From the NCBI RefSeq assembly GCF_006345805.1, contig NC_043001.1, forward strand, positions 39,370,001-39,434,000: a DNA stretch of 64,000 bases, read 5' to 3'. Source of the stretch: Octopus sinensis. Its lineage: Eukaryota. Position 1 is the first letter of the stretch. Each line of letters starts with the position of its first letter. Below are positions 2,925 to 42,990 of the stretch, one piece after another. Under the pieces are notes generated by a model that worked only from the letters and a program-made list of their open reading frames with translations, searched no databases and was not told the DNA's origin. A program made the translations under genes and the position numbers.

Positions 2925-5870
2925 AGTTCTACAAGCTCAGAACTGGCACAGTCAATGTTGGCACTATGAAATGTAGGTTCGGAGAGATAGTTGAGATGCT
3001 TGAGCAGAGTCATGTAGATGTTTGCTGAGTCCAAGAGATACGATGGAAGGAGCCTCAGCTACACTGCTTACAAGCAAAAGGCATAGATACAAATTTTTCT
3101 GAGTAGACAACAATGAAGGCCTAGGTAGCATAGATATTCTACTAGCAGAGAAATCGGTGGATAAGGTGATTGATGTAGTTAGGGTTTGTGATAGGATTAT
3201 TAATCTAAGAATAGCCTTGTTTGATGTAGCTGTGTCAGTTATCTATGCATATGCTCCCCACACTAGATTCACAGATACTCAGAAGTACCACCTCTGTGAA
3301 TCTCTTCTGAGGACTAGCTCTTCTGAGGGTTACCTGGACAATGAAAGACACCAACATTTGCATCATGGCAAGGGACTTCAATGGACATGCTGGAAAATAG
3401 TCTGATGGATTTCAGGGTGTGCATGACAGCTATGGCATTGGCTCCAGAAATGAGGCGGGGACAAGGCTGCTGAAATTTTGTTATGCTCATGGCTCACTGG
3501 TTTGCAACACCAACTTCAGAAACCTGTCACTTGATCACTTATCAATTTGGAGGACATACCAACCAGACTGACTACATTCTCACCAGACTCAGGGATAGAT
3601 GCATACAAAATATTTCCCAGGGAAAGAATGTACAACTCAGCCTAAGTTAGTTGTTAGTGACTTCAGACTTACAACCAGAAAAATCCAGACGAGCCAATAT
3701 GGAAAAGGAGGTTGTGGAATCTCAAGGATCCTTCAAATGGACAGAGATTTAGAGATGTCCTCAAGGAGGCCTATGATGAGAAGGAGAGAGTGATAGAGGC
3801 ATATGACATAGAGGACAACTGGAAGTTCCTACAGGACAATCTACTAAGAGAAACAGACCAACAAATTTTTGATTGAAGCAAAGCCACTGCCAGACCAAGT
3901 GTGAACAATGATGTTGACTGGGTCGTAAAAGAGAAGAGACAGGTCTGGGAAGAGTGGAAAAGAGGGGTGTGGTAGTAAAGAATCATAGCAGAAGGCTAAA
4001 AGAGAGAGTAGAAGCAAAATAGAAGAGGTGTACCAGTGTCCTACAGTATGAAGATTAGAAACTTGAAGTGTTCCTGATTGCTAGACAGTATGTCTGTGAG
4101 AAAATGTAGGAGAGAAGTGCATGTAGATGGATAATGGTATGCTTACACTTAGTGGTATGGCCAAGAAAGAGTAATATGAAAAAGTTACTGTGAAATTTTG
4201 AATGTAGGTACTGAATGGGATAAAGGGAATCTTCCTTGGGTAAACCCAAAAGAGGGACTGGCTATCCTAGTAGACAGCAGTATGGTAGATAAAGCAATTA
4301 AAAACATGAACTCTGGGAAAGCCCCTGGTCCATCCAGAATCCCAGCTGATATGCTCAAAATATCCAGTAAGGTATGGGCTACTCCCATGCATAGTTAATC
4401 AGGTCATTCAGGAAGGTGTAATACCCAGTGATTGACATAGCAGCATAATTGTTGGTATGGGTAATGCTTTAAATAGAAGCAATTACAGAGGCATCAAACT
4501 CTTGGATCAGTTGAGAAGATTATGGAGAGAGTTATAGCCCAATTAATTAGGAGCAGAATGAGGCTAGATGAAATGTAATTTGACTTTGTCTGGGGAAGAA
4601 ACACTACTGACACTACTTTAATTGTCAGTAGCTAAAAATAAGCCATTATACTTGGCATTCATTGATCTAGAGAAACCCTTCAATGCAGCATGATGTGGTG
4701 GGGTCTGAGAAGGAGGCCAGGGATGGACTGGTGAAAGCTGTATGGGCCATGAACAAAGATAATGTCAATAAGATGAGAATTAACCAAGAGTACAGTGAAG
4801 AATTTGGCGTACAGGCAGGAGTTCATCATGGCTGAGTACTTAGTCCCCTCTTTCTCAATATTTTCTTCCAGGCCATAACAGAAGAATTCAAGACCAGCAG
4901 CTCTTGGGAACTACTATATGCTGATGATCTTACCCTCATAATAGGTTCCATATCAGAGCTAGATGAGAAAAACCAGCTGTGAAAGTAAATCCTGAAATCT
5001 AAGGTCATTAAAGTTAACTTAGCAAAAGCTAAGGTCTTAGTAAGCAAGAAATCTAACAAGACTCTACCTAACTCAGGTAAGTGGCCCTATTCGATTTGTA
5101 GGAAAGGTGTAGACAGTAACTCCATATAGTGTGCTCAGTGTTAGCTATAGATACACAAGAGGTGCAGTGGATTAATAGGAAGGTTATCAGAGAAGATAGT
5201 TTTCACATGTGATAGATGCACATAATCCATAAAAGCTCAGGAAATTGATTCTCTCAAATGCCCTGGTGGCTCATTAGAGGTAGCAGGTAATTTCTGCTAC
5301 CTAGAGGACCAAATTAGTAGTGGGGGAGAATGCACAGAGAATGTGATAGCTAGAATAAGAATAGAACAAGAGGAAATTCAGAGAGCTGTTACCTTTGTTG
5401 GCCACAAGTTTTCTCTCTCCAAGTAAAGGGAAGATTGTATGATGCATGTATACAGACAGGTAATTACACATGGTAGTGAGACATGGACCCTGAATGCAGG
5501 GGACATGCAAAGGTTAGAAAGGAATGAGGTTAGTATGCTCCATTGGATGTGCAATGTAAGTGTACATGTATGACAGAGTGCTAGTGTATTGAGAGAGAGA
5601 AGTTAGGAATAAGAGGAATTAGTTGCTGTGTGCAAGAGAGAAGACTGCACTGGTTTGGTCATGCTGCAGATGGATGCTGACAGCTCCATAAAGAAGTGCT
5701 GATCTTTCAAAGAAGATAGAATATGTGGAAGTGGAAAACCCAGGAAGACATGGGATGAAGCACTGATGAACAACCTCAGTATGCTGAACCTTTCAGGCAA
5801 GATGACAAAGGACCAAGATGCCTAGTGCCTTGCTGTACTCAAGAAGACCCATACTCCACAGCAGAAATGT
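2925..5870 (+). mobile_element. Near full-length degenerate RTE-clade LINE (APE endonuclease + RT)
   Basis: LRTGTVNVGTMK..VQEIRW at the start, VIYAYAP, KAPGPSRIPA, NYRGIKLLD, LLYADDL at ~4915 and HGSETW at ~5470; many stops and frameshifts. Confidence 0.9.
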
Positions 5871-6814: not shown

Positions 6815-8073
6815 TCAGGTCATCCTATAAGTTATGTCCGATTTTACCTTTTTTAAAATTGAATGAAATTTAATAGTATTTTAGAATGTTTAATGGAATT
6901 TTTTTTTATGCATTTAAACTAATCAAATATCATTTTACAGAATAATAGAAATGAAATTTCTTTGATTAAAACCCTTTCTAACATGGAAGTATCCAAAGAG
7001 CATTTGAGGCACATAATGCTTTATGAGTACAAAAAAGGAAAATCTGTAGCCGAAGTGACTTGAAACATACACTCAGTTTATGGGAAAGAATGCTTGAAAT
7101 AAAGAACTTGTAGAAGATGGTTTGCAAAATTCAGACGTGGAGATTTCAGCCTTGAAGATGAGGATCCAGTTGAGTTTGATAATAAGCTCCTTGAGGTATT
7201 ACTTGAAGAAAATCCTGCATTATCAGTTGAAGAATTGGCAATAAAGCTTAGTTCAAAACATACAACTGTTCATCATCATCTTCAACAACTTGGAAAAGTT
7301 CTAAAACTTGGAAAATGGGTGCCTCGTGAATTGTCCGAAAGCAACTGCAAATCCCAAGTCGACATCTGCTCTTCTCTCCATTCTCGCAAACTCATTTTAC
7401 CCTTTTTGGATAGACTTGTGACTAGTGACGAAAAATGGATCTTCTATCGAAATATTAAACGTCGTAAACAGTGGCTTGGTAAAAGGGAAAAGCTCAACCA
7501 CAACCAAGAAGGGAACTTCATAGGAAAAAGGTTCTTCTCTCTATATGGTGGGATTGCAAAGGAGTAATTCACTTTGAATTGTTACCACCTAATGCAACAA
7601 TCAATGTTCAAGTCTACTGTCAGCAATCAGAGCATTTGAACCAAGCTCTGAAGAAAAAAAGACCTGCTTTATTGAATTGAAAAGGAATAATGTTTCATCA
7701 GGATAATGTGCGACCCCACACTTCAAACATCACATCACAGAAGGCCAAAGAGCTTAGTTGGGAAAAAATTCCTCATCCATTTTATTCTCCCAACTTTGCT
7801 TCTTCAGACTACCATTTGTTTCATAGTTTACAGAATCATTTGGGGGACATAACTTTCGCAAGCCAGGAGGAGGTTGAAACTGACATTTCAGAGTTCTTTG
7901 CTTTGAAACCAAAAGAGTTTTACATTGATGGGATTAAAAAGCTTGTAAATAGATGAAAGAAAGTCATAGATAATCAGAGAAAGTACATTGATGATTAAAT
8001 TACAGTTAAATATAACAGTTGATCAGTTGTTTTCTTTATTCAAAATTCGGACAGAACTTATGGGATGACCTGA
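6815..8073 (+). mobile_element. mariner (DD34D) transposon, full length, defective
   Basis: ~30-bp TIRs TCAGGTCATCCTATAAGTTATGTCCGA and TCGGACAGAACTTATGGGATGACCTGA; length ~1.26 kb. Confidence 0.95.
6983..7998 (+). pseudogene. mariner transposase pseudogene
   Basis: MEVSKEHLRHIMLYEYKKG start; WVPREL, VTSDEKW, HQDNVRPH and YSPNFASSDYHLF motifs; in-frame stops and frameshifts. Confidence 0.92.
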
Positions 8074-8814
8074 TTTGTAAAATAGAGCAATATAGAGGAG
8101 AAATAATAAAATACTAAAATGAAAAACAAAATGCAACATCAAAGTTTCGTTTGTTCATGTTTTAGACATCTTCTATGTCTCTCAAATGCCTCAGAACATC
8201 CAAATAAAACATTTTAAGTTTATCTCTTAAGATTTTCTATAGAATTCAGAGTAGGGAACACTATGAATTTTTGAAAATATCTAAATGTTACTTCTACTGT
8301 ACTTTTTCTTGGAGAGCATACAAATAGAAAAAAATTGATACCTCATTTGTGAAATCTGGGCAAGTGAATTGATTGTAATCTTGCCTAATTGGCCTAAATG
8401 AATAATTAACTATATGTATAAGGTCATATCTTTGAAATTCAGGTGATAATCATCTTCAAATTTTGCAAATTATTAGTGTCCATGGAATAGCAGTTGCCTA
8501 TTTTTTCAGCTTCTTGAAAATAAAACCATATTTTTGGCAATTTTTAAAATATTTATGTAAAAACTATTTTGCTACTTGTAACAAACAGTCAATTTTGCAG
8601 TGTTTTCAGACCTAGCTAAATCCATAAGTACATGTCACAAGGACTTGAGTTTTGGCATATTTGTAGTAGATATAAATTAGATAAACCCTGAGATTTGAGA
8701 AATGATACCATTTCAATAAAATTCTAATGGACTATTAAAAATAGAAGAGTTTTGGATCAGGACATCCACATAATTTGAAATTAAAATTTGAATTTGTGTA
8801 TATTTTTTTCCTTA

Positions 8815-9265
8815 GGCGGGTGCCAGCAACGTCAACTTGGCTACAGCTATCCCGTCCAGTACAAGAGGAACTGCGGGATCAGAGCAACGGTTTGCGTGCG
8901 CGCTCGCTCGATAGAGCGGTAGCATCAGCCTTCCCTGAGCGATAATGGTTGAACACCTCTGAGCCGCAACTGCAGCCGGGTCCGAGTTGTTTTTCAAATG
9001 CATCTCAACCTCAAGGTGCATGCCTTAGCTCAGAGTTTACCGTCTGCACGTCACGTTTGTGCGACGAGAGGCAGCGTCGCCGGCGGGGATTGCCATTCTG
9101 CGAGTTTTGCGGCAGCAGCCTCACCGTCGTCGTCGTCGACGTCCCGTCCGACTTGTTCAAAGGGATCAAGACGAAAAGGATCGCTTGCATAAGACTTCGG
9201 AGTGACATGCTTAGTAGAGCAGCTACCACACTGCGATCTATTGAGTCGCTTCTTGCGAATGACAT
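8815..9265 (+). pseudogene. 28S rRNA 3'-terminal fragment (rDNA pseudogene)
   Basis: CAGTACAAGAGGAAC, GATAATGGTTGAACACCTCT and TAGTAGAGCAGCT..CTGCGATCTATTGA match conserved 28S 3' motifs (CAGTACGAGAGGAAC, GATTATGACTGAACGCCTCT, GCAGAGCAGC..GCTGCGATCTATTGA) in the correct order. Confidence 0.85.
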
Positions 9266-9269
9266 GATC

Positions 9270-10060
9270 CGACCTTTCGAGGCAGCCCCGCACGGAAACG
9301 AAGCAAACAAGTGTCACGGACAAGAAACGAAGGAGTTGGCGGTGGCTGCAGTGGGAGGAGCCGTCAGGGGCCCTGCCGGGTGCATGGCGGAGACGGAGAC
9401 GGAAGCGAACAAAGAGATGCATGAAGAAGACGAGCGAGAAAAAGAAAGGGAGCACCATATCGAGCGGCAACGGGGAACTAGCGCAGTAAAAGTAATTTGC
9501 TTGTGGCGGCGAGCCAGCAGCGCAGCGAAGGAAAATGACAAGAGATGGAGAAAAGGAGTGGCTGTCTACGCAACGCGACTGGCCTCTTGGTGTGGCGGCG
9601 ATGTTTGAGGACAGGCACCTTCGGCCGCGTCACTTCATACCGGCGACACGGCTTGCATTGCACAAGTGGGTGGCGATTCGTCTCAGCGAGTAAACGGCCG
9701 CAGTAAAGTCGAACAGCGTTAAGGAGAGAGAGAGATGAAAGCAAACTGTTATCTGTGCAAGAAATGCGGTCGTAGTTGATGCTACCGTCATGTCTCCTTC
9801 CGTCGAAGCCGCCGCGCTCACCCGTGTGCAAAGGTCGTCGCAATATCGACTGTGAGTGTGTGTCCGTGTGTTATGCGCCCCGAGTGATCGTTGTTGTTGT
9901 CGTCTTCTGCTGCGTAAGGAAGCCGCCACCGGCAACATCCGTGCTCGTGGTCGATGTCGCATGTGGAAATGTCGTCGTCGTCGTCATAAGTGGGTGGTAT
10001 CAAGCACGAGTCAGTGTATCCATGTACTATACGCTGGGATGAGGTGAGGGTAAACGGGGT
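9270..10060 (+). other. rDNA intergenic-spacer-like GC-rich sequence, copy 1
   Basis: Follows the 28S 3' end; 9866-10060 is a diverged paralogue of 11881-12075, which runs on towards the 18S. Confidence 0.6.
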
Positions 10061-10202
10061 CGACTTGGAACTTGTACGGACCGGTGGAATCTGACTGTCT
10101 AACTTAAATAGAATATCACGTAGCTGGCCAAGCCGCACAGACGCGACGAGATTTCTGCCCAGTGCTCTGAATGTCAAAGTAAAAAAATTCAACCAAGCGC
10201 GC
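10061..10202 (+). pseudogene. 28S rRNA fragment ending ~33 nt upstream of the R2 insertion site
   Basis: CGACTTGGAACT..GGAATCTGACTG..GATTTCTGCCCAGTGCTCTGAATGTCAAAGT..AAATTCAACCAAGCGCG matches the 28S segment before GGTAAACGGCGGGAGTAACTATGACTCTCTTAAGG. Confidence 0.92.
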
Positions 10203-11712
10203 GAAGTTGTAAACCGGAGTCTGCCACTGGTCAATGGCTTGACGCGGTAAGAGAGCTTACGTCTGTGGGTGGGACTATACTGGTAGATGAATCATGGTGG
10301 ATTGGCCCTCTCACTTTGGACAAGCTAAATATTTTCCATTTCACCCAAAGCTTTGTCACAGTTGTGGGAAGACCTTATAGAGATATTGGTGATTTTGATT
10401 AGGAGATGGGGGGCCTTCCCGTTAGGGCTAGGTAGGATACCGCTGGACTTACCGACACGAGTCCCATGTCAGCTAGTTAATAATCGGCCCTTCTAGATAG
10501 GCTGCGCTCTTTTGGCACAATACTGCAGTGGTTCCCAACTGACCAATGGCAAACTCTGGCTTACAACTTCTTGCAGCATAGTTGCGGGGGACTCTTTATT
10601 GTTTGGGGTTAGGGTCATTTGTTGGGCGATTCTTTGGCTGTACAGGTGGTTCTTTGACAGGAACCGGTGGACAGCAATCGGGCCCGGTGATTAACCGCAG
10701 CTTGTTCCATGGGGTGTAGCTAGTTTGGTTGGAGAGATTTTAGGTGGTAGTTTGGCGATATCTCTACCTTCTTTGGTGTGGTGGATCCCATGCTGCTCTT
10801 TAGGTTATTCTTCAATTGGTAATCCCTGTCTCTCGAGGAAATTGCTGTGCAATAACATGAATAATAACGTAAAGCAGATAAACATATGGCAGCCAGGCGC
10901 CGATAAACCGGTGGACTATGGGTAAGGGACAGGGCCTGCAGATCAGGCCCTGCATGTGGCTCATCTATGTCGGGCCAACTGGGGTGGATAACGGATTATA
11001 TCCACCCCGCGGTACGAATTGTGATACCACTTTGGTTAGGACTGACAATGTCGGTGGTCGAGTGATGCGCTCGACACTGACATATTCACGATGTAGACCA
11101 GACAAGTTCGTGCTAGATTGAATATGCTCTTATGATTCCCTGCACATGTGATGAATATGCTCTTATGATTCCCTGCACATCGAACTCTATACTCTGTTCG
11201 CTATGTCCTTGATTCTTCTCTTCTCCTCGACGATGGGGGGAACATGTGGAGTATACACATGGCATAAAGCCGGTATACAAGTGCGAGAAATGCGATAGGG
11301 AGAGCAAGCATCCCCACTCTATGAGATGCCACGCTAGTAAATGTAGTGGTGCGTTGGTTTCTAATGCATCCAACTCTGTTCAGCTTCCCTTCCAGTGCGA
11401 TCACTGTAGCTGTTCTTTTTTGACGGCTGTTGGTAGGTTGCTGCACGTACGCCACCGGCATCCTATCACAGCTAATACATGCAGGATCACACGGTACAAG
11501 GAAAACTTGTCCTTAGCAGTCCTGAGAATTGGTAGTCGTTGATATGACCGTTCTTTTCGAGAACGCTCTAGAGAAAGTATGCAAGTACCAGTCGCTCATT
11601 TCTCTTCTGATGGAAGAGTTTGATCGGCCAGTGGAGGTGTACGATCTCCCTGTTGGTGCCTGATGCGCGTCTGCGAGCAAAGCACTGGACGCATTAGAGA
11701 AAATTGACTGTT
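10203..11712 (+). mobile_element. R2 non-LTR retrotransposon remnant with three N-terminal zinc fingers (R2-A type), internally deleted
   Basis: Abuts the 28S target. One frame (11195-11465) gives CSLCP*FFSSPRRWGEHVEYTH, CEKCDRESKHPHSMRCHASKC and CDHCSCSFLTAVGRLLHVRHRHP (CCHH, CCHC, CCHH). Another frame (11526-11663) gives ELVVVDMTVLFENALEKVCKYQSL..VGA*, resembling the RLE nuclease C-terminus. Myb and RT are absent. Confidence 0.8.
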
Positions 11713-11880
11713 AAAATATTTGAATTTTTGGCAATTGCCTTTTCTGAACAACCCTAGTACATGATTCAGTATAGAGACAAATTATATAAATTAAAAAATT
11801 TATTTAACAATCTTGTTATTAAAATAATTTATTCAAAAATGGACTCTAAAAAGTGATACTACAAAAAATTAAGCAAAAAA

Positions 11881-12989
11881 TGTGTTATGCGCCCTGAGTG
11901 GTCGTCGTTGTCCTCGTCGTTGTCGCCATAGTCTTCTGCCGCAACGCGGCAAAGCCGCCACCGACTGCACGCGGTGCGCACGGTCGATATTGCGTGTGGA
12001 AAGGTCATCGCTGTCGTCAGTGGGCGGTATTGAGCAAGAGTGTGTGTGCGCTGGGACGAGGTGCGATTAAACGGGGTGAACGCGATCGCGATGATGCTGC
12101 CAGCCTAGTGGGTGTTGCCGGCCGCACTCGAGGGTGTGGTCGATACCGCAACTCGGTGCATCCGGCAAATGCCAAGAAGTCGACAGGGACAAGCCACGAT
12201 TTTGGTGACTGTAGCTCTCCAAGGGAATCCACACTACTATAGCGGGTACGAGCCTGTCGGCGGTCACCGCCTCCTACAAACATCCGCGCTCGTCATCGAC
12301 CGATAGCTTGCGTCCCGGTTCACGTGCACGCGAACAGGCTCCGTCTCCGGTCTGCTTTCCTTCCACAGCCGCCGACCGCAGTTGGCGGAGGCTGCCTTCA
12401 CACGTCTGTGATTGTTATCAGCCGATAGTTCGCCTTCCTCTGCTCTCTTGTGTCCGTCCCGGTCCGCCCTTACTCGACTGTGCTCCGTCTCCGGCGCGCC
12501 TTCCTTCCACGGCCGTCTCCGCCACCTTCCGACCACTCCTCGACGCTCTGCTGACGATGCCCGGCGGCAGGCGTTATATCCTCCTGCATGAACGTCCGCG
12601 TCTGCGTGGACGCGACCACGGCCGATTCTGCTAGCCTGGCGTCAGCTGCTGGCCGAAAGGTGACGCCGTAGTCGATACTGCAACATGGTCGGTCCGGTAA
12701 ACGTCGAGAAACCAGCGGCGGAAATCCACACTCTAGGTGGCCGTCGCACCCCGAGGGAGTCCGGACAATTATAAGGAGTACGAACCGGTCGACTAAGTTT
12801 CTGTTACGCTATGGACCGCGCTTGGCGGAGGCCGCCCAGCGCCCAGCGGATACTGCAGCCTACATGCATCTGACCTCGTCGTCGGTAGATAGCTCGCCTT
12901 CTTCCGCTCACTCGTGCACGTCCCGGGACCGATTGCACGCCTTCTCCAGCGCGCCTTACATCCGCGACCGTCTCCGCCACCTTCCGCAT
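11881..12989 (+). other. rDNA spacer/5' ETS-like GC-rich sequence, copy 2 (may include an unrecognisable 18S 5' end)
   Basis: GC- and CpG-rich; starts with the paralogue of 9866-10060 and leads into recognisable 18S. Confidence 0.6.
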
Positions 12990-15064
12990 TGGTCGCGACA
13001 CAAATATTAGACTGAAACCGATGTGTATGGGCTGTCGCAGCAGCCACCGCGTTCTGCATGCGGGTCGCAGCGTTCGGCGGCTTCACGTCCTTTGATTTTG
13101 GTAACTCTGGATAACTGTATGTACGATCGCACGGGCCAGTATCGAGTAGCTTTCGCGCAACGGGTTCCTCCTATCAAATGTGACGGCTCGGTAAGTGCCG
13201 ACTGTCGTGGAAACAGGTAACGGGGAATCAGGTTTCAATTCCGGAAAGGGAGCATGTGAAACAGCTACCACATCCAAAGAAGGTAGCAGTCGTGCAAAAT
13301 ACATACACCCAGCACAGGGAGTAGTGACGAAAAATAATGTCGCGGCGCTCTGTCGAGGTCCCGGGATCAGAATGTGTGCACTTCAAAGCCGTTAACGAGG
13401 CTCAACTAGAGGCAAGTCTGGTGCCAACAGTTTTAGTAATTCCAGCTCCGGTAGCGTATGTTAAAATTGTTGCCTTTGAAAAAAAGTTCATAGTCGGAAT
13501 TCGGGTCTCGAAAATGTGCCCTAGCACATTCGGGGCGACGGCGCTGTTGCGGGCACACCTTGCGCGCATCCTCTTCGGTCATCCGTTCGCACGCCCGGCC
13601 CTAATCACCAGTGCATGCGCGGTCGGCCCACGGAGTTCTGTGTGCATCACCGACGCGTCGGCAACCTGCTCTGTCTTCGCCTGTCCAGTTTTACACTCCG
13701 GCGGCGTCGCGTGGGCTGGTGCAGGGACCATGAGACAGGCATTGTTGTTCACGTTGCGGTAGCGCGTCCACCTCCCGGTCGTTTCGCCCCCGCACAGTAC
13801 CTCCGAGGGTGCTTTTTGCAGAGTGTCGGAGGCAGCCAATACGTTCACTGTGAAAAACTTAGAGTGCTCAAAGCGAGCCCTGCCAGCTTGCATACGAAAA
13901 GCATGGTATGATGGAAAATGGCCTCGCCCGCGCATCAGCCGACGGTCTCTGTTCACGACGAGGTGATGATCGAAGGGAGCGATTGGGGCCACTTGTATTG
14001 CGACGTTAGAGGTGAAATTCTTGGATCGTTACAAGACGCACTGCAGCGAAAGCGTGTGACAAGCACATTTTCCTCGATCAAGAGCAAAAGTCGGAGGTTC
14101 GAAGACAATCAGATACCGTCGTAGTTCCGACCGAAAACGATGCCGACTGGCGCTCCACCGACATTCCTTTCGGCGACGTGGCGGAGTGCTTGCGCGGAAA
14201 ACCATAGTCGGTTCCGGGGGAAATATAGCTGCAAAACAGAAACTTAAAGGAACTGACGGAAAGACACCATCTGGAGTGGAGCTTGCGGCTTATTTTGACT
14301 CAACAAGGCAAAAATCCCTAGGTCCGGACACCGGTAGGATTGACAGATCGATAGCTCTTAGTTGGTGGAGCGATCTGTCTGGTTGATTCTGATAATGAAC
14401 AAGATTCCGGCCTGCTAACTAGCGCGTCTATTAGTGCTTTTCCAGCAGCGTGGTGGCACCGAAGCCGTCCTCGGTAGCTCCACGCGCGGCCTGCACATGC
14501 TGTTGCTGCTGCTCTCCTTCGCATACGTCGCTGCGGATGCACCCGTCACCTTTCGCGGGTCGGTTGCAGTGTGATTGTGGCGTCAGTTGCGGAGTGGCGG
14601 CGGTGACTCGGTCGGCTCGACCCGCGGGATTCGGCGACGGCACGCCATCAAGTCCGGGCCAGTTGGCTGGTGAACGCAGCTCTTCTTAGAGAGACGGGTG
14701 GTAGAAAGCTGCACGAGGAGGAGAGATAAAAGGTCTGCGATGCCCTTACTTGTCCAGGGCTGTACGCGCTATACTGGAAGTATCAGAGGGCGCGTCTCCC
14801 TCCGGCGCAAGAGGGTCGGGAAACCTCTGAACCACCTTCAGCGATAGGGATCGGGGACTAGGACCAACTCTGTGAACAAGGAATTCCCAGTAGGCGCGGG
14901 TCACCAGCCCACGTGATCATTCCCTGCCCTTTGTAAGCACCGCCCATCGCTACTACTGATCGAACGGTCCAGTGAGGTCCTCGTTCTCTGATGGACCGAA
15001 GAAGATAACCGAACCTGATTGCTTAGACGAAGTAGAAGTCGTAACAAGGTTTCCGTAAGTGAAC
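12990..15064 (+). pseudogene. 18S rRNA pseudogene with long GC-rich expansion segments
   Basis: Collinear 18S motifs: GGGGAATCAGG, GTAGTGACGAAAAATAA, GGCAAGTCTGGTGCC, AAACTTAAAGGAA, TTAGTTGGTGGAGCG, GTCGTAACAAGGTTTCCGTA. Universal sites are damaged: 530 loop reads GTGCCAACAGTTTTAGTAA, a ~35-nt deletion lies at ~14357, and the 3' end stops at GTGAAC. Confidence 0.95.
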
Positions 15065-15649
15065 AGGCAAGTTCAAGACAAGTACAGAACAAGAAAATTT
15101 TTACTTAAAATATTGCAGCTAAGGATAAAATTTGAATATTAAAAGTTATTTGATTTTAATTTACAAAGTAACATTATAATTAAAAAAAGGTACAATCATT
15201 TTGTTAAAATATTGATACACTGGAATATTAAAAAAAATGAGAGCCAGAAGTACCAATGTAGCTAAAGTTTTATGCAAAGTTGAATAGTATATATGGTAGG
15301 CAAATTCATTGTAAAAATTTAGGCATTGGGTCAAGACTAAAACTGTGAAGACTTGGCAATAACTCAAGCAAATTTTACTGTGAATTTGTTGTTATAGGTA
15401 GATTTTATCGTAGTATATAACTAATTTTTGTATTAATTTTATTTATTGTACTAATTATGTACTACTATTATTTTTTTATAACCGTTTTTCAAATTTCTAA
15501 TTATTAATTAATAATTAAAAAATGGATTTTTTTTTTAAATGCAAAAAATATTTTGGGTTATTTTTTACTTTTAATAGAAGTAATAACTTGTCCTGAGCTT
15601 TTCTAGGTTTATAATCTTAAGAATAGTATACATATACTTTTACATTTTT

Positions 15650-16814: not shown

Positions 16815-19500
16815 CAGGGAGTGACGACCCTGCCTGACACGAGTTCCGGGCTCAGCTGGCTCCGGCTGACAGCACCCGGTATGGGCCCCTATCCAGGGTT
16901 ACGGAAAGGAGACAACCTTCAAAGAAATCCGGAGTGGAGCCCCGAAGGCGGTCTAGTGTTCGACTCGACACTCTTCCGGCAGCTCCTGCAACCAAGCTGG
17001 TGCCAAACGTAATGCTCTGCACTCCTTTGGACTACATCAGCAAGGTCGAGAGAGGAAACCTGACGATTGGGCTACCCAGGACTTTCTTATCTATAGCCCA
17101 GGCCTGCGCAAAACTGGAGAGGACACTTCAGTGCTGCTGTAAAAAGCTGCAGAAACAACACGGGAAGTAACAGTCACGAGTGATAAGTCCATTCAGATTG
17201 GCGTAAAATATGGGCGCTACGGGTTACCTCTGACGGTGAGAGGGACCTCCGTGTCCTATTGGTTAGCTACTGCCCACCTCAAGCTGGGCAGCCCCCAGTT
17301 AATAAGGTGCTGACCCGCCACAGGCCGCCTGCTTCATTGGGTGCTTGGAGCTAAGAGTATGACTTGAAAAGCGGCCTGCAACCTCTGCACCAGGCAAACA
17401 ACTAAAAGTCAAGAAAACACCAGTCCTGCGGTTGGCAAGCTGGAATGTCAGGACCATGTGCCCTGGAATATCTGATGATCTACTCAGGGTTGAAGACACA
17501 AGGAAAACGGCCATCATTGACCGTGAACTAAAGAAGCTCAACATAGGCATTGCTGGGCTACAGGAGACAAGACTTCCCTCAAACAGCAAACTCAAAGAGC
17601 AGGATTTCACCTTCTTTTGGCAGGGAAGCGATCCAGAAGAACCTCGTCAACATGGCGTTGGCTTTGCAGTGAGAAACTCACTACTCTCCTCAATAGAACC
17701 ACCATCAGGAGGGACTGAGCGTATCCTCTCACTGCGCCTCTCGACTTCTTCTGGCTCAGTACATCTACTCAGCATCTATGCCGGCAAAAACACCATCCTG
17801 CTTCAGCACCTTCATGAGCTTCTGTGTCAGTGCTGGGAAGAGGGTACAGTCCCTCAGGATATGCGGGATGCTAACATCATTACGCTTTACAAAAACAAAG
17901 GTGACCGTGGTGATTGTAACAGTTACCGTGGAATATCTCTTCTAAGCACTGTTGGAAAGACCTTTGCCCGCGTTATCCTGGCCAGGCTACAACTACTTGC
18001 TTCTCGAATCTATCCGGAATCGCAGTGTGGCTTTAGAAGAAGCAGATCAACTATCGATATGATATTCTCCATACGCCAACTTCAGGAGAAGTCCAGAGAG
18101 CAGAAAATGCCATTATATATGGCCTTCATTGATCTAACAAAGGCCTTTGACTCGGTAAGCAGAACAGGCCTCTTCACCCTGCTCCAAAAAATCGGATGTC
18201 CACCAAAGCTGCTAAGGATCATCAAGTCTTTCCATGATGACATGCAAGGCACCATACAGCACAACGGTTCAACATCAGCCGCCTTCCAAATAAAAAATGG
18301 GGTAAAGCAAGGTTGTGTCCTCGCTTCTACATTGTTTGGCATCTTCTTCTCGCTCTTACTCTCACATGCCTTTCAGACATCAGATGATGGAGTGTTTCTG
18401 CACAGTAGAAGTGACGGGAAACTGTTCAATCTCTCGCACCTGCGTGCCAAGACCAAAATCAGAAACGTCCTGATCAAGGAGATGCTATTTGCTGATGATG
18501 CCGCTCTGGTATCACACACAGAGGAAGCCCTCCAAAGGCTCATTAACTGTTTTGAGCAAGCATGTAACGACTTTGGCTTAGCTATCAGCCTTAAGAAGAC
18601 CAACATCATGGGTCAGGCTACATCGGACATCCCAAACATACATATTGGAGACCACAGATTACAAGAGGTGGAGAAATTTACCTATCTGGGCTCTACCGTC
18701 ACCTACAACCTATCCCTTGACGCTGAGCTCAATATACGCATTGGCAAGGCAGCTGCTGCGATGACCCAACTCTCCAAACGGGCTTGGGACAACAATAAGC
18801 TGACCAAGACCACGAAAATGAAGATCTACCAGGCATGTGTACTTTGCACTCTACTGTATGGAAGTGAGACTTGGATGCTCACACGCCAAGAGCATCGCCT
18901 AAACATCTTTCACCTGCGCTGCCTCCGAAAAATCCTTGGCATCAAATGGCAGAACCATATCCCCAACAAAGATGTTCTCAGGCAAGCAGGAATACCAAGC
19001 ATGTTTGCACTCCTCACACAAAGACGTATGAGATGGTTTGGGCATGTTAGCCGTATGAAAGATGGAAGAATCCCCGAGGACATACTCTACGGGGAGCTTG
19101 CTAGGGGTACTAGGTCTGTGGGTAGACCGTTCTTACGTTACAAGGATGTTTGCAAAAGGGACATGAAGGCTTGCAACATCAATATTAGCGGTTGGGAGGC
19201 AGTTGCCGGCAACCGTGAAGACTGGCGACGTACTGTAAAAAGAGGGAATACAAAGGAGTGACAGAGAGAGAGAGAGGAGAAATGGAAAAACAAGAAAAGA
19301 CGTCAACAAGAAACTATGGCATTACAACCAGCCAGGAACAGTCTTCGCTACATTTGCAGTACCTGCCAGAGGGAGTGTTTGTCCAGGATAGGACTACACA
19401 GCCACAGCAGGAAATGTATCAGGACATGAAATGTAAAAGCCGGACTAGACTACTTTATGCGCAACTCCATTGTCTCCCGAGACAAAAAGGATGCCAACAA
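16815..19500 (+). mobile_element. Young RTE/BovB-like LINE with ~600-bp 5' UTR, in-frame internal deletion and intact 3' end
   Basis: GC-rich relative to flanks; 3' end CCATTGTCTCCCGAGACAAAAAGGATGCCAACAA is typical of RTE elements; 5' boundary approximate; no TSD found. Confidence 0.9.
17432..19261 (+). CDS. 609-aa RTE ORF: N-terminal half of APE endonuclease fused in frame to a complete RT domain
   Basis: ASWNVRT, GLQETRL and LSIYA are joined at ~17782 directly to GKNTILLQHLHELL..YRGISLLS..QCGFR..FIDLTKAFD..GVKQG..LFADD..YLGS..YGSETW. After TGA at 19259-19261 the same frame continues to the C-terminal zinc finger CSTCQRECLSRIGLHSHSRKC (stop 19427-19429). Confidence 0.85.
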   Translation: MASWNVRTMCPGISDDLLRVEDTRKTAIIDRELKKLNIGIAGLQETRLPSNSKLKEQDFTFFWQGSDPEEPRQHGVGFAVRNSLLSSIEPPSGGTERILSLRLSTSSGSVHLLSIYAGKNTILLQHLHELLCQCWEEGTVPQDMRDANIITLYKNKGDRGDCNSYRGISLLSTVGKTFARVILARLQLLASRIYPESQCGFRRSRSTIDMIFSIRQLQEKSREQKMPLYMAFIDLTKAFDSVSRTGLFTLLQKIGCPPKLLRIIKSFHDDMQGTIQHNGSTSAAFQIKNGVKQGCVLASTLFGIFFSLLLSHAFQTSDDGVFLHSRSDGKLFNLSHLRAKTKIRNVLIKEMLFADDAALVSHTEEALQRLINCFEQACNDFGLAISLKKTNIMGQATSDIPNIHIGDHRLQEVEKFTYLGSTVTYNLSLDAELNIRIGKAAAAMTQLSKRAWDNNKLTKTTKMKIYQACVLCTLLYGSETWMLTRQEHRLNIFHLRCLRKILGIKWQNHIPNKDVLRQAGIPSMFALLTQRRMRWFGHVSRMKDGRIPEDILYGELARGTRSVGRPFLRYKDVCKRDMKACNINISGWEAVAGNREDWRRTVKRGNTKE

Positions 19501-19514
19501 TATATATATATAGG

Positions 19515-20518
19515 TATGTATAATATAAATAATATATAAATATATGCATATATACATACATATATGTACATACCTACATATATGAGTATATATACATGCA
19601 TATATGGGTACAGGACATAAAAAAACGTTGAACACAATGAGAAATGAAAACATTAAAAAAACATAGAAACGAACTTTTTTCGAACAATGAAAAAAAACAG
19701 AGAAGCGTGACATACAATGTAAAGAATATTCTCCTTCTTCAATTGTCTCTGTTTCATCTACTCCACATTTCGAAGGCAATGACAAGACGCGACTTCGTTG
19801 AAACAATCCTTTCCGCAAAGCAAATTAAATAAAATTTGGAATTTTTTGCGGAGGCTGAAAGTGGTGACAAGAACATGATAGTAAGAACAACAGTAGAAAG
19901 AATTTCCCCTCTCTCACTCCTCCTCCTCGACTCTCTCGTCGCTGACACATGACGAAAGATAATCTGTCTTTCTACCCACAACCTTCGAAAAGGAAAAAAA
20001 ACGTGCTTATACTGTTTCCTTCATAAGTTCGTCTTCCTCGCATTCATAATAATTTTTCTAACCCTAACCCCAACCCTATCATCTTGGCCTAACAGCCCTC
20101 ACCGTTTGTTTTTACTGTTTTGTTCTCACTTTCCTGTTCTTTTTATTGTCTTGTTCTTAGTGTCCTGTTCTTGTAACCACTTTCACCCTCCGCAAATAAT
20201 TTCAAATTTTATTTAATTTGCTTTGCGGAAAGGACTGTTTCAACGAAGTCGTGTCTTGTCCTTACCTTCGAACGTGGAGTAGATGAAACAGAGACAACTG
20301 AAGGAGAATATTCTTTATGTTGTATGTCTCATTTCTCTGTTGTTTTTTTCGTTGTTCGAAAAAAGTTCGTTTCTGTTTTTGTTTTTGTTTTCGTTTCTCA
20401 TTGTGTTCAACGTTTTTTATGTCCTGTACCCATATATGCATGTATATATAGATATATATGTAGGTATGTACATATATGTATGTATATATGCCTATATTTA
20501 TATATTATTTATATTATT
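19515..20518. repeat. Inverted repeat, ~350-bp arms (19515-19872 and 20167-20518) with ~295-bp spacer
   Basis: For example GTTTCATCTACTCCACATTTCGAAGG (left) versus CCTTCGAACGTGGAGTAGATGAAAC (right); the ORF track shows the same peptide (FLCPVPIYACIY) on opposite strands. Confidence 0.92.
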
Positions 20519-20556
20519 TTATGATCGAACACCACGCATCATTTTCCAAGTAAGTT

Positions 20557-20559
<3 letters not shown>

Positions 20560-20651
<92 letters not shown>

Positions 20652-20676
20652 CATGTATGTATATATATACATATAC

Positions 20677-20723
<47 letters not shown>

Positions 20724-20733
20724 ATATATATAT

Positions 20734-20808
<75 letters not shown>
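20560..20808. repeat. (TATC)n-(TA)n-(GATA)n microsatellite block
   Basis: Visible directly. Confidence 0.95.
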
Positions 20809-41432: not shown

Positions 41433-41695
41433 GGGTGCTTTTACATGCCACCGGCATAAGGGCCAGTCAGGCGGTACTGGCAACAGCCATGCTCAAATGG
41501 TGCTTTTTATGTGCCACCTGCACAGGAGCCAGTCCAACGGCACTGGCAACGACCTCGCTCGAATGTTTTTTCACGTGCCACCAGCACAAGTGCCAATAAG
41601 GTGACATAGGTAATGATCACGCTTGAATGGTGCTTCTTATGTGCCACCGGTACAGAAGCCAGCTTGTTGCTCTGGCAACAATCACGCTCGTATGC
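41433..41695 (-). repeat. ~65-bp tandem array, 4 diverged units, in an RTE-tail element
   Basis: Each unit has GTGCCACC, usually a GCCAG-N9/10-CTGGC stem, and CGCTCGAAT. Confidence 0.75.
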
Positions 41696-41719
41696 CAGTC
41701 ATCGAATTTGATTTCGATT

Positions 41720-42990
41720 TCAATTTCACTTCCCTCACATATATACATACGCATATACATACAAACACATGCATATGCATACCCATGCATAGACATACAC
41801 ATATGCATAAATATACATGCATATACATACGCACACATATATAAAAAATATATGTGTATACGTATATATGTGTACATATACAGCTACACACATACATATA
41901 AGGTTCATACATACACATACATATATACTAACGTACACATACATGTATACAGGCATGTGTGCACAGATACAGGCACATGCACTCATATGTATGTACATCT
42001 ACTCATATATACACACATTTATATAAGCATACGTATATGCACACACACATGCATGTGCATATATTCATATATGTATATATACATACATATACAGCCGTGC
42101 ACTCACACACATACAGGTATGTATAATTATATTCTTACACACACATGTACATAAATACCCACACATCCATAAACACTTCAAATTTATCTACACATAGCCA
42201 TAATTGTTTACGCATGTGTGTGTATGCATACATGCCCATAAGTACAAGGAAATGGAAAGTACGTAAAGTCATCTATATACACGATTAAATAGCATGTGAA
42301 ATAGTTTATTGGAATAAGTGGAATTATAGTTACGCATACACATATCGATTTACACATATTCATATACACATGCATGAATACATAGATACCCATGCAAACA
42401 CACACATGTGCATACATAATTGTGTGCATTTGTATACATACACGTATATTAACACAGGAACAGGAAAAATAAAATCATATATTTTTATGCTCATATGATC
42501 TAAGAGCATGTGTATATAATCTATGTGGATATGTGGATGTGCACACACACACACAAATATTTTTGTATATGTGTGCATATGTATATGCATGTATGTGTAT
42601 GTATTTTTGTATGTCTATGCACGGGTAAGCGTATGCATATGTATGTATGTATATGCATATGTGTGTGTATGTATATGTATGGATATTTAAACATCCACAT
42701 TATACTAAAACTGTTAAGAATAGATATAGTCATCATGAAATGCTATAGTATAGACACACTAATTCAAAATTTCATATACCAAATGGGTTCATATTTATTA
42801 ATAAGCATCTACATTAATTTCATTTAGATGGGTGATGGGTATGAAGAATATACATACATATATGTGTGTGTGTGTGTGTGTGTGTGAACATATACATATA
42901 TATGCATATATGTGAGGATTCATGTATATACATGTATCTGTGTGCATATGTGTGTGTGACCATATGTGTGTATATATATACACACACACA
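41720..42990. repeat. Degenerate (CA)/(TA)/(TG) low-complexity tract
   Basis: Visible directly. Confidence 0.9.

Follow-up and report, generated by a model that had tools for sequence, protein, structure and literature searches.

A decayed R2 copy fused to 28S sequence

The 64,000-nt stretch of Octopus sinensis DNA analysed here (positions 39,370,001 to 39,434,000 of contig NC_043001.1, assembly GCF_006345805.1; referred to below as the window) harbours at positions 10061-11712 a dead copy, with multiple deletions, of an octopod R2 retrotransposon of the non-LTR class (without long terminal repeats) and of the three-zinc-finger (A) lineage. This remnant is fused on its 5' side to 144 bp of the 28S rRNA gene and is located in a ribosomal DNA (rDNA) fragment, likewise dead, within its spacer. 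We consider its identity and this location, taken together, as practically certain. About 1.5 kb is left of an element of roughly 5 kb, approximately 70% being gone. The surviving R2 parts are a partial 5' untranslated region (5'-UTR) with a putative ribozyme core, a leader, three zinc fingers and the last third of the endonuclease. With its stops and frameshifts, without reverse transcriptase (RT) and recognisable 3'-UTR, and with the ribozyme-pairing strand of 28S gone, the remnant as a whole is non-functional. Its right edge as originally noted (11712) lies close to the end of recognisable R2 sequence (11703).

For comparison at the nucleotide level two loci of O. vulgaris were used, L001 (OX597831.1, 79,794,481-79,815,572) and L002 (OX597842.1, 25,641,989-25,675,347), which were reached through the R2-like proteins P0090 and P0091 from a masked O. 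vulgaris query. The components of the block, in 5' to 3' order, are as follows:

10058-10201, plus strand: 28S piece, 87.5-88.9% identical to octopus 28S (Rfam LSU model 2132-2240)
10202-10226, plus strand: filler at the 28S-R2 joint, replacing 28S -35 to -1 and the first ~150 nt of R2
10227-10449, plus strand: R2 5'-UTR with putative ribozyme-core motif (nhmmer against L001 3126-3347, E=4e-11)
10540-10570, plus strand: arm 2 of an inverted repeat, likely filler template (inverted-repeat searches of the window)
10730-11117, plus strand: R2 leader or N-terminal extension, degenerate (nhmmer against L001 and L002)
11119-11180, plus strand: perfect 29-nt repeat with 33-nt spacing (copies at 11119 and 11152), in a degenerate open reading frame (ORF)
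11195-11461, plus strand: three zinc fingers, frame 2 (R2 matches in PDB, R2 profile)
11487-11525, plus strand: joint of a ~2.6-kb internal deletion, at which the frame shifts (jump in the colinearity with L001)
11526-11703, plus strand: C-terminal part of the restriction-like endonuclease (RLE; VVVDMTV..FE..K..KY..PVGA), with an in-frame stop at 11661-11663

The zinc fingers comprise a CCHH finger (ZF1, 11195-11260), a CCHC finger (ZF2, 11282-11344) and a further CCHH finger (ZF3, 11396-11461). Despite an in-frame stop in ZF1 (11210-11212), this triplet is homologous to that of A-lineage R2. The best PDB matches of the finger peptide were the R2 proteins 9nl3, 9dou (R2Tg) and 9nl2, with E-values of 5e-8 to 3.5e-7 and with all three fingers aligned; the next match after the R2 proteins was a generic C2H2 protein (E=0.014). 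Against a profile hidden Markov model (HMM) made from eight full-length R2-like proteins, the same peptide reached E=9e-23. When this R2 HMM was run on all 2745 six-frame peptides of the window, the finger peptide and the endonuclease peptide came out second and third. Searched exhaustively with HMMER, 1.84 billion representatives gave 80 matches, and named among the best of them are proteins of Argonauta hians and Octopus vulgaris, one of which is annotated as 'type-2 retrotransposable element R2DM'. Thus, the named best matches in the PDB and protein searches are all R2, in a comparison set without explicit NeSL or Utopia sequences. Assignment to NeSL, Utopia or another RLE clade had been named as the outcome that would speak against an R2-A remnant by an earlier sequence-only reading of this DNA, and the triplet it described is confirmed by the PDB and HMM matches. 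The window fingers are 60% identical to those of one L001 copy, 56-60% identical to those of the second O. vulgaris lineage described below and 50-52% identical to those of R2-1_ORu and R2-1_OSi, with 41-52% across the published ORu, OSi and ECi families. At the nucleotide level, the finger block (11162-11487) shares 67% identity with L001 4618-4945.

The window copy is colinear with the O. vulgaris R2 copies in four nucleotide blocks. The leader (10730-11117) matches L001 4026-4412 with E=2e-17 and L002 5015-5424 with E=4.5e-19 (nhmmer), and its peptide STLTYSRCRPDKFVLD matches the protein P0008. The leader of ~900 nt proposed in the sequence-only reading corresponds to the region 10227-11117, which is colinear with the 5'-UTR and the N-terminal extension of O. 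vulgaris R2. Measured against the O. vulgaris copies, the window copy lacks roughly 150 nt at the start of R2, ~400 nt of the 5'-UTR, ~160 nt before the fingers, ~2.6 kb containing Myb, RT and the CCHC and PD parts of the endonuclease, and small pieces inside the endonuclease part. The largest of these losses is seen as a jump of the L001 matches from 4945 (window 11487) to ~7590 (window 11526). Homology to octopus R2 ends at approximately 11487-11500, ahead of the Myb region, and no match of the R2 HMM to the RT domain was found between 10200 and 11900. Both the absence of Myb and RT and the shift of frame into an RLE-like segment had been predicted correctly.

Of the endonuclease motifs (CCHC, PD..D/E..K), only the distal part is present; the CCHC and PD motifs were removed by the deletion. 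The peptide 11526-11660 aligns to positions 1052-1104 of the R2 HMM, which correspond to the endonuclease region (E=0.007), and over 67 aa it shares 49% of its residues with the O. vulgaris R2 copies in their RLE region (E=3e-14, small database). In this alignment the O. vulgaris sequence KVVVVDVTIRLEQGDALKGAALEKMRKYRPLEQLLLQEFDCPVEVHGPPIGACGAWCRPASLALDAL is paired with ELVVVDMTVLFEN-------ALEKVCKYQSLISLLMEEFDRPVEVYDLPV---GA*CASASKALDAL of the window. The segment 11526-11663, for which a lack of RLE similarity would have spoken against the R2 reading, thus resembles RLE domains by both measures. Used alone against PDB, the endonuclease peptide gave no significant match. At the nucleotide level this block is colinear with L001 ~7590-7798, and the signal extends up to 11703 (z=4-8).

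In the 5'-UTR the motif CTTGACGCGGTAAGAGAGCTTACG is found at 10238-10263, and its O. vulgaris counterpart CCTTGGCGTGGTAAGAGAGCTTACG lies ~160 nt into the element. The core motif is common to R2-1_OSi, R2-1_ORu and R2-1_ECi and to the scallop element R2-1_MVa, in which it is located at or near the 5' ends. Its AAGAGAG is complementary to the 28S sequence CTCTCTT just upstream of the site where R2 inserts. Since many R2 ribozymes use upstream 28S as the P1 strand, paired with 7 nt after P3/L3 (Eickbush et al. 2013, PMC3774820), we infer that the motif represents the P3/L3/P1' core of a ribozyme like that of hepatitis delta virus (HDV). No Rfam match to an HDV-like ribozyme was obtained at E<=10. 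In the window copy the core motif, shared with five mollusc R2s, is kept, while the 28S strand CTCTCTT is missing.

Compared to the 28S flank published with the R2 of O. sinensis, the 28S piece (10058-10201) shows 87.5% identity, and compared to a flank merged from O. vulgaris and O. sinensis 88.9% (nhmmer E=4e-34); the alignment of this piece by Rfam LSU, at model positions 2132-2240, is weak. Its variable helix CGTAGCYGGCCRAGCCGCACAGACGCGA / CGTAGCTGGCCAAGCCGCACAGACGCGA fits Octopus and Eledone apart from CpG-type changes and differs from Sepia and from bivalves. The cephalopod host suspected from the sequence can therefore be narrowed to an octopod. The 28S identity stops at CAAGCGCG (10194-10201), as had been reported, at a distance of 35 nt from the R2 site TTAAGG|TAGCC and not of 33 nt: in every mollusc 28S of the supplement of PMC13188248, CAAGCGCG is followed by GGTAAACGGCGGGAGTAACTATGACTCTCTTAAGG and then by the R2 site. 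With 28S identity ending at -36 and no 28S downstream, the window copy is not a canonical two-sided insertion.

The 25-nt filler between 10201 and 10227 is by alignment neither 28S nor R2. An inverted repeat of 31 nt, with arm 1 at 10203-10233 and its partner at 10540-10570 in the R2 5'-UTR, includes the filler in the first arm; the arms are complementary at 27 of 31 positions (BLAST E=7e-4 in a search of 7 kb by 64 kb). Judging from this similarity, the filler was likely templated from nearby R2 sequence in inverted orientation. The joint thus represents a junction-spanning deletion of ~185 nt, from 28S -35 to R2 ~+150, which is bridged by filler. The shortfall of 35 nt is part of this deletion and does not reflect a different target site, because the O. 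vulgaris relatives are joined to 28S at the canonical R2 site. We also considered that diverged 28S continues beyond 10201 (GTAAACCGGAGT compared to GTAAACGGCGGGAGT), which is unprovable; an inverted copy of 10547-10570 explains this stretch better. A possible second 28S piece at 9686-9706 (E=0.013-0.5) was without significance according to nhmmer.

The block is located in the spacer of an isolated rDNA fragment

The remnant lies within a GC-rich island of 6.25 kb (8810-15065, 48-61% GC) in DNA of 30-37% GC. Outside the interval occupied by the block and its flanking repeats, the island consists of the following parts:

8810-9271, plus strand: last ~460 nt of 28S rRNA, pseudogene, left island end (Rfam LSU_rRNA_eukarya)
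9272-9865, plus strand: spacer following the 28S 3' end, resembling an intergenic spacer, 56% GC, no family match
12078-13169, plus strand: spacer or external transcribed spacer-like sequence with 57-nt subrepeats, 61% GC
13170-15071, plus strand: 18S rRNA pseudogene, right island end (Rfam SSU_rRNA_eukarya model 311-1823, five pieces)

The 28S 3' end was missed in an Rfam scan of the whole window at the gathering threshold and was detected in a local scan, which aligned 8834-9270 to model positions 3007-3399 of 3401 (61.3 bits, E=1.6e-13). It is 79-82% identical to the O. vulgaris 28S in L001, with 90-95% identity in conserved blocks, and its sarcin-ricin loop is mutated. No ITS, 5.8S or further 28S follows the 18S pseudogene, and no other rDNA is present in the 64 kb, which were the context examined. 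The island is an isolated, decayed fragment of an rDNA repeat junction comprising the 28S 3' end, the spacer and 18S. In keeping with an rDNA orphon or dispersed pseudogene, within this context it shows the rDNA order, isolation, and mutations at universal rRNA positions. At the island edges neither a target-site duplication nor poly(A) was seen, and the window spacers have no counterpart in O. vulgaris L001 or L002.

The 28S-R2 block is situated ~790 nt downstream of the 28S 3' end and upstream of 18S, that is within the spacer, at a place which does not follow the rDNA order. It therefore cannot be the leftover of a resident 28S gene, and the 28S piece was moved together with R2. According to the sequence-only reading, the remnant was still attached to its 28S target. 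This holds insofar as 28S sequence is present directly upstream of R2, while this sequence is not a resident target.

Several further observations concern the island. AT-rich DNA with a T7 run directly precedes the 28S 3' end at 8810. The 57-nt subrepeat occurs in three copies before 18S (12331-12387, 12475-12531 and 12930-12986), which are 68-82% identical; such subrepeats are typical of rDNA spacers. The 18S pseudogene has long GC-rich insertions in V4 and V7, its 530-loop is broken and a universal motif is changed from GCCAGCAGCCGCGGTAAT to GCCAACAGTTTTAGTAAT. It ends 8 nt short of the 18S 3' end and is directly followed by AT-rich DNA.

Direct repeats around the block and its possible route of insertion

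The block is flanked by direct repeats and ends in an AT-rich tail:

9866-10060, plus strand: direct repeat A1, candidate upstream copy of a target-site duplication, aligning with 11880-12077
11704-11880, plus strand: AT-rich tail ending in AAGCAAAAAA, ~22% GC, 177 nt
11880-12077, plus strand: direct repeat A2, candidate downstream copy of the target-site duplication, aligning with A1

A1 and A2 (~195 bp) are 77-78% identical (BLAST E=2.9e-15), with sharp edges on both sides, and no further copies of this repeat were found in the window. The insert 10061-11880 exactly fills the interval between them, the repeat homology beginning and ending at the block ends. A1 and A2 have diverged from each other by 23%, roughly double the divergence of the 28S piece from functional octopus 28S (11-14%), as expected if duplication and insertion were one event. 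The 5' edge of the 28S piece and A1 have a short microhomology overlap of a few bases, AACGG..T being shared between the target TAAACGGGGT|GAACG and the 28S sequence GCGAACGGTCGACT. This edge corresponds to the start of the conserved 28S core after a GC-rich expansion segment. At the other end the block is closed by an A-run (AAGCAAAAAA). The idea that repeat A is itself the 28S expansion segment upstream of the core was dropped (nhmmer E=3.5). The tail 11704-11880 showed no similarity to the 3'-UTR of O. vulgaris R2, the island flanks, the rest of the window or the O. vulgaris loci; its resemblance to the island flanks is at the level of chance (z<2).

Whether the 28S-R2 block came by retroposition is, in our estimation, an evenly balanced question. 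The best explanation overall, in which we place slightly more than even confidence, is the ectopic insertion of an uncleaved 28S-R2 co-transcript accompanied by a long target-site duplication. In this scenario a donor R2 in a 28S gene would have lost the junction, namely 28S -35 to -1 and the first ~150 nt of R2, and with it the CTCTCTT strand which pairs with AAGAGAG of the ribozyme. Its transcript would then be unable to release itself from the 28S precursor, and this would explain why 28S was carried along. The uncleaved RNA would undergo reverse transcription away from its target, at a site within an rDNA spacer, and cDNA synthesis would enter 28S for 144 nt and halt at the foot of the GC-rich expansion segment. 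The 5' end of the cDNA would be joined through a few bases of microhomology, and nicks ~195 bp apart would give rise to the flanking duplication. The large internal deletions could have arisen before or after insertion. The R2 RT is known to jump between templates in vivo, giving 5' chimeras (PMC3414825), and R9, a relative in the R2 superclade, is reported to make a duplication of 126 bp (PMC6895275, citing Gladyshev and Arkhipova 2009).

Several points weigh against such an insertion, and most of them argue at the same time for a DNA-level origin, in which the block reached the spacer by copying or capture with no RNA intermediate, through replication template switching, microhomology-mediated repair or recombination of rDNA units. 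In that case A1 and A2 would represent either a duplication made by repair or subrepeats native to the spacer (e.g. copies of spacer or gene promoters), and the AT-rich stretch would be native. R2 itself is not known to make a duplication as long as ~195 bp. In the final 177 nt (11704-11880) no R2 3'-UTR is recognisable, so that the true R2 3' end, which is required by target-primed reverse transcription, cannot be demonstrated for the insert. The junction deletion and its filler could equally be the product of DNA repair after insertion, an inverted, apparently templated filler being typical of repair synthesis, and microhomology at the 5' edge fits repair as well. Moreover, L001 and L002 are heavily rearranged and contain tandemly amplified 28S-R2 composites, which shows that in O. 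vulgaris such composites undergo reshuffling and amplification as DNA, too. On the other hand, the foreign block starts and stops precisely at the edges of the A repeats, of which just two copies exist, and it ends in an A-run. Further, the 28S edge at the foot of a structured expansion segment is better explained by a stalled reverse transcriptase than by a random break, and a native stretch of 22% GC would be odd in a spacer of 56-61% GC. On balance we regard the DNA-level origin as possible but rather unlikely.

Two other explanations fare worse. The correct order and orientation of 28S and R2 and their proximity to the canonical site are what would be expected from an in-situ relic, in which the 144 bp are the original target in a 28S gene that once bore R2 and was otherwise deleted. 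This is very unlikely, given that the piece lies inside a spacer, ~790 nt downstream of a 28S 3' end of the same orientation and upstream of 18S, that no 28S follows the R2 remnant and that the flanking direct repeats mark an insertion. Such a relic would require the fusion of two rDNA units by deletions which happened to end at the repeat edges. Slightly less probable still is that the remnant was not a single decayed copy and propagated as a non-autonomous, internally deleted R2 derivative similar to the SIDEs. Retention of the 5' and the C-terminal/3' portions with loss of the middle is indeed the SIDE architecture (PMC3414825), but the 28S strand that would pair with the ribozyme is absent, the 3'-UTR is not recognisable, and neither the window nor the two O. 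vulgaris loci contain another copy sharing these deletion joints.

Returning to the insertion of an uncleaved co-transcript, we consider it doubtful, although worth stating, that the block records off-target retrotransposition in vivo by an octopod A-lineage R2, combining a ribozyme-dead co-transcript, a giant duplication like that of R9 and 5' transduction of 28S. If this were true and general, A-lineage R2 proteins would act on non-cognate sites and carry upstream host sequence along, which bears on the site fidelity claimed for the A-clade R2 proteins used for gene insertion.

Relatives of the remnant and its significance

The existence of R2 in cephalopods is not new. R2 elements have been described in molluscs since Kojima et al. 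2016 (PMC5035012), and the cephalopod families R2-1_OVu, R2-1_OSi, R2-1_ORu, R2-1_ECi, R2-1_SAt and R2-1_SLy were published with their 28S junctions (Genome Biol 2026, PMC13188248, supplementary file 16), the respective hosts being O. vulgaris, O. sinensis, O. rubescens, Eledone cirrhosa, Sepiola atlantica and Sepia lycidas. R2-1_ORu, R2-1_OSi/OVu and R2-1_ECi resemble the window copy in the three-finger N-terminus and the ribozyme-core motif at the 5' end, and their target is the R2 site of 28S. However, they constitute another sub-lineage: the 5'-UTR after the core, in both length and sequence, and the 3'-UTR of R2-1_ORu, R2-1_OSi, R2-1_OVu and R2-1_ECi do not align with the window.

The O. 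vulgaris copies in L001 and L002 belong by sequence to the same lineage as the window copy, with colinear 5'-UTR, leader, finger and RLE blocks and a shared ribozyme-core motif. Among them are near full-length ORFs (HMM positions 40-1143), and they have canonical 28S junctions and a recognisable 3'-UTR of ~350 nt, whereas in the window copy neither true junction is left, the 3'-UTR is gone and the location is a spacer. The 5' junction of this lineage reads ...GGGAGTAACTNNGACTCTCTT|GTGGGGCCTG... (also ...GACTCTCTT|GTGGGG) and the 3' junction ...AATTACA|TAGCCAAATGCC, both corresponding to the canonical R2 site. These nucleotide-level relatives thus occupy the R2 site of 28S in O. vulgaris. The lineage is abundant in O. 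vulgaris, where it occurs on at least five chromosome-scale records, and its 5'-UTR and 3'-UTR are unlike those of R2-1_OVu. The O. vulgaris R2 proteins CAI9719783.1, CAI9728464.1 and CAI9725411.1 are annotated as 'type-2 retrotransposable element R2DM' or 'transcriptase'. Based on these sequence comparisons, the remnant points to a second R2 lineage in Octopus which is not in the published table, where R2-1_OVu is the sole entry for O. vulgaris.

The two loci differ in their organization. In L001, R2 at the canonical 28S site is followed by the 28S 3' end and then by at least four R2 5' ends in tandem; between the tandem copies all that is left of 28S is TAG plus CTCTCTT, and no 18S is found within 19 kb. 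L002 consists of at least five tandem units, which are 5.8-7.4 kb long and comprise ~200 bp of 28S ending at the R2 site and an R2 truncated in RT. Some of these units have expanded CCTAGTATGTTATGA repeats in the R2 5'-UTR.

Among more distant systems, the triplet of vertebrate A-clade R2 (R2Tg, 9dou/9nl3; 9nl2) aligns finger for finger with that of the window (E=5e-8), at a finger identity of ~30-35%, and the window offers protein fragments only. The R9 element of bdelloid rotifers serves as an earlier example of an RLE-type element with nicks set far apart and a duplication of great length (PMC6895275); R9 makes this duplication at its own specific 28S site in every copy, in contrast to the single off-target candidate of ~195 bp in the window. 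Similar to the window copy, SIDEs and 5' chimeras of Drosophila R2 (PMC3414825) have internal deletions and foreign RNA attached at the 5' end by template jumps. Drosophila SIDEs, however, have a working ribozyme and 3' end and form families at the 28S site, none of which applies to the window copy.

In summary, the remnant belongs to a known family, is dead and lies in an ordinary setting, rDNA debris, and intact octopus R2 was already published. As a dead copy it matters little alone, octopod R2 being documented with intact copies in rDNA. Its value is modest and lies in exemplifying how R2-rDNA debris arises and disperses, here as a 28S-R2 chimera moved into a spacer. The one mildly unusual feature is the possible target-site duplication of ~195 bp around this chimera. 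As a source for A-clade R2 insertion tools, the near-intact O. vulgaris copies are of interest and not the window relic.

Dispersed R2 fragments seem to be common in octopods, since one is also present in Argonauta hians (GAB1610529.1). This protein (P0001), from a 4.8-Mb contig, is a truncated three-finger R2 N-terminus which was called as a gene with AT-rich junk translated upstream.

Other features of the window

No tRNA genes were found in the window. The long ORFs at 756-1382, 20283-20741 and 41627-42154 are translated microsatellite-like CA/TA-rich repeats and no genes. At a distance of 2.3 kb to the right of the rDNA island, an ORF of 609 aa (17432-19261, plus strand) contains only RVT_1 and a short N-terminal stretch; it resembles a long interspersed nuclear element (LINE) and is unrelated to R2.

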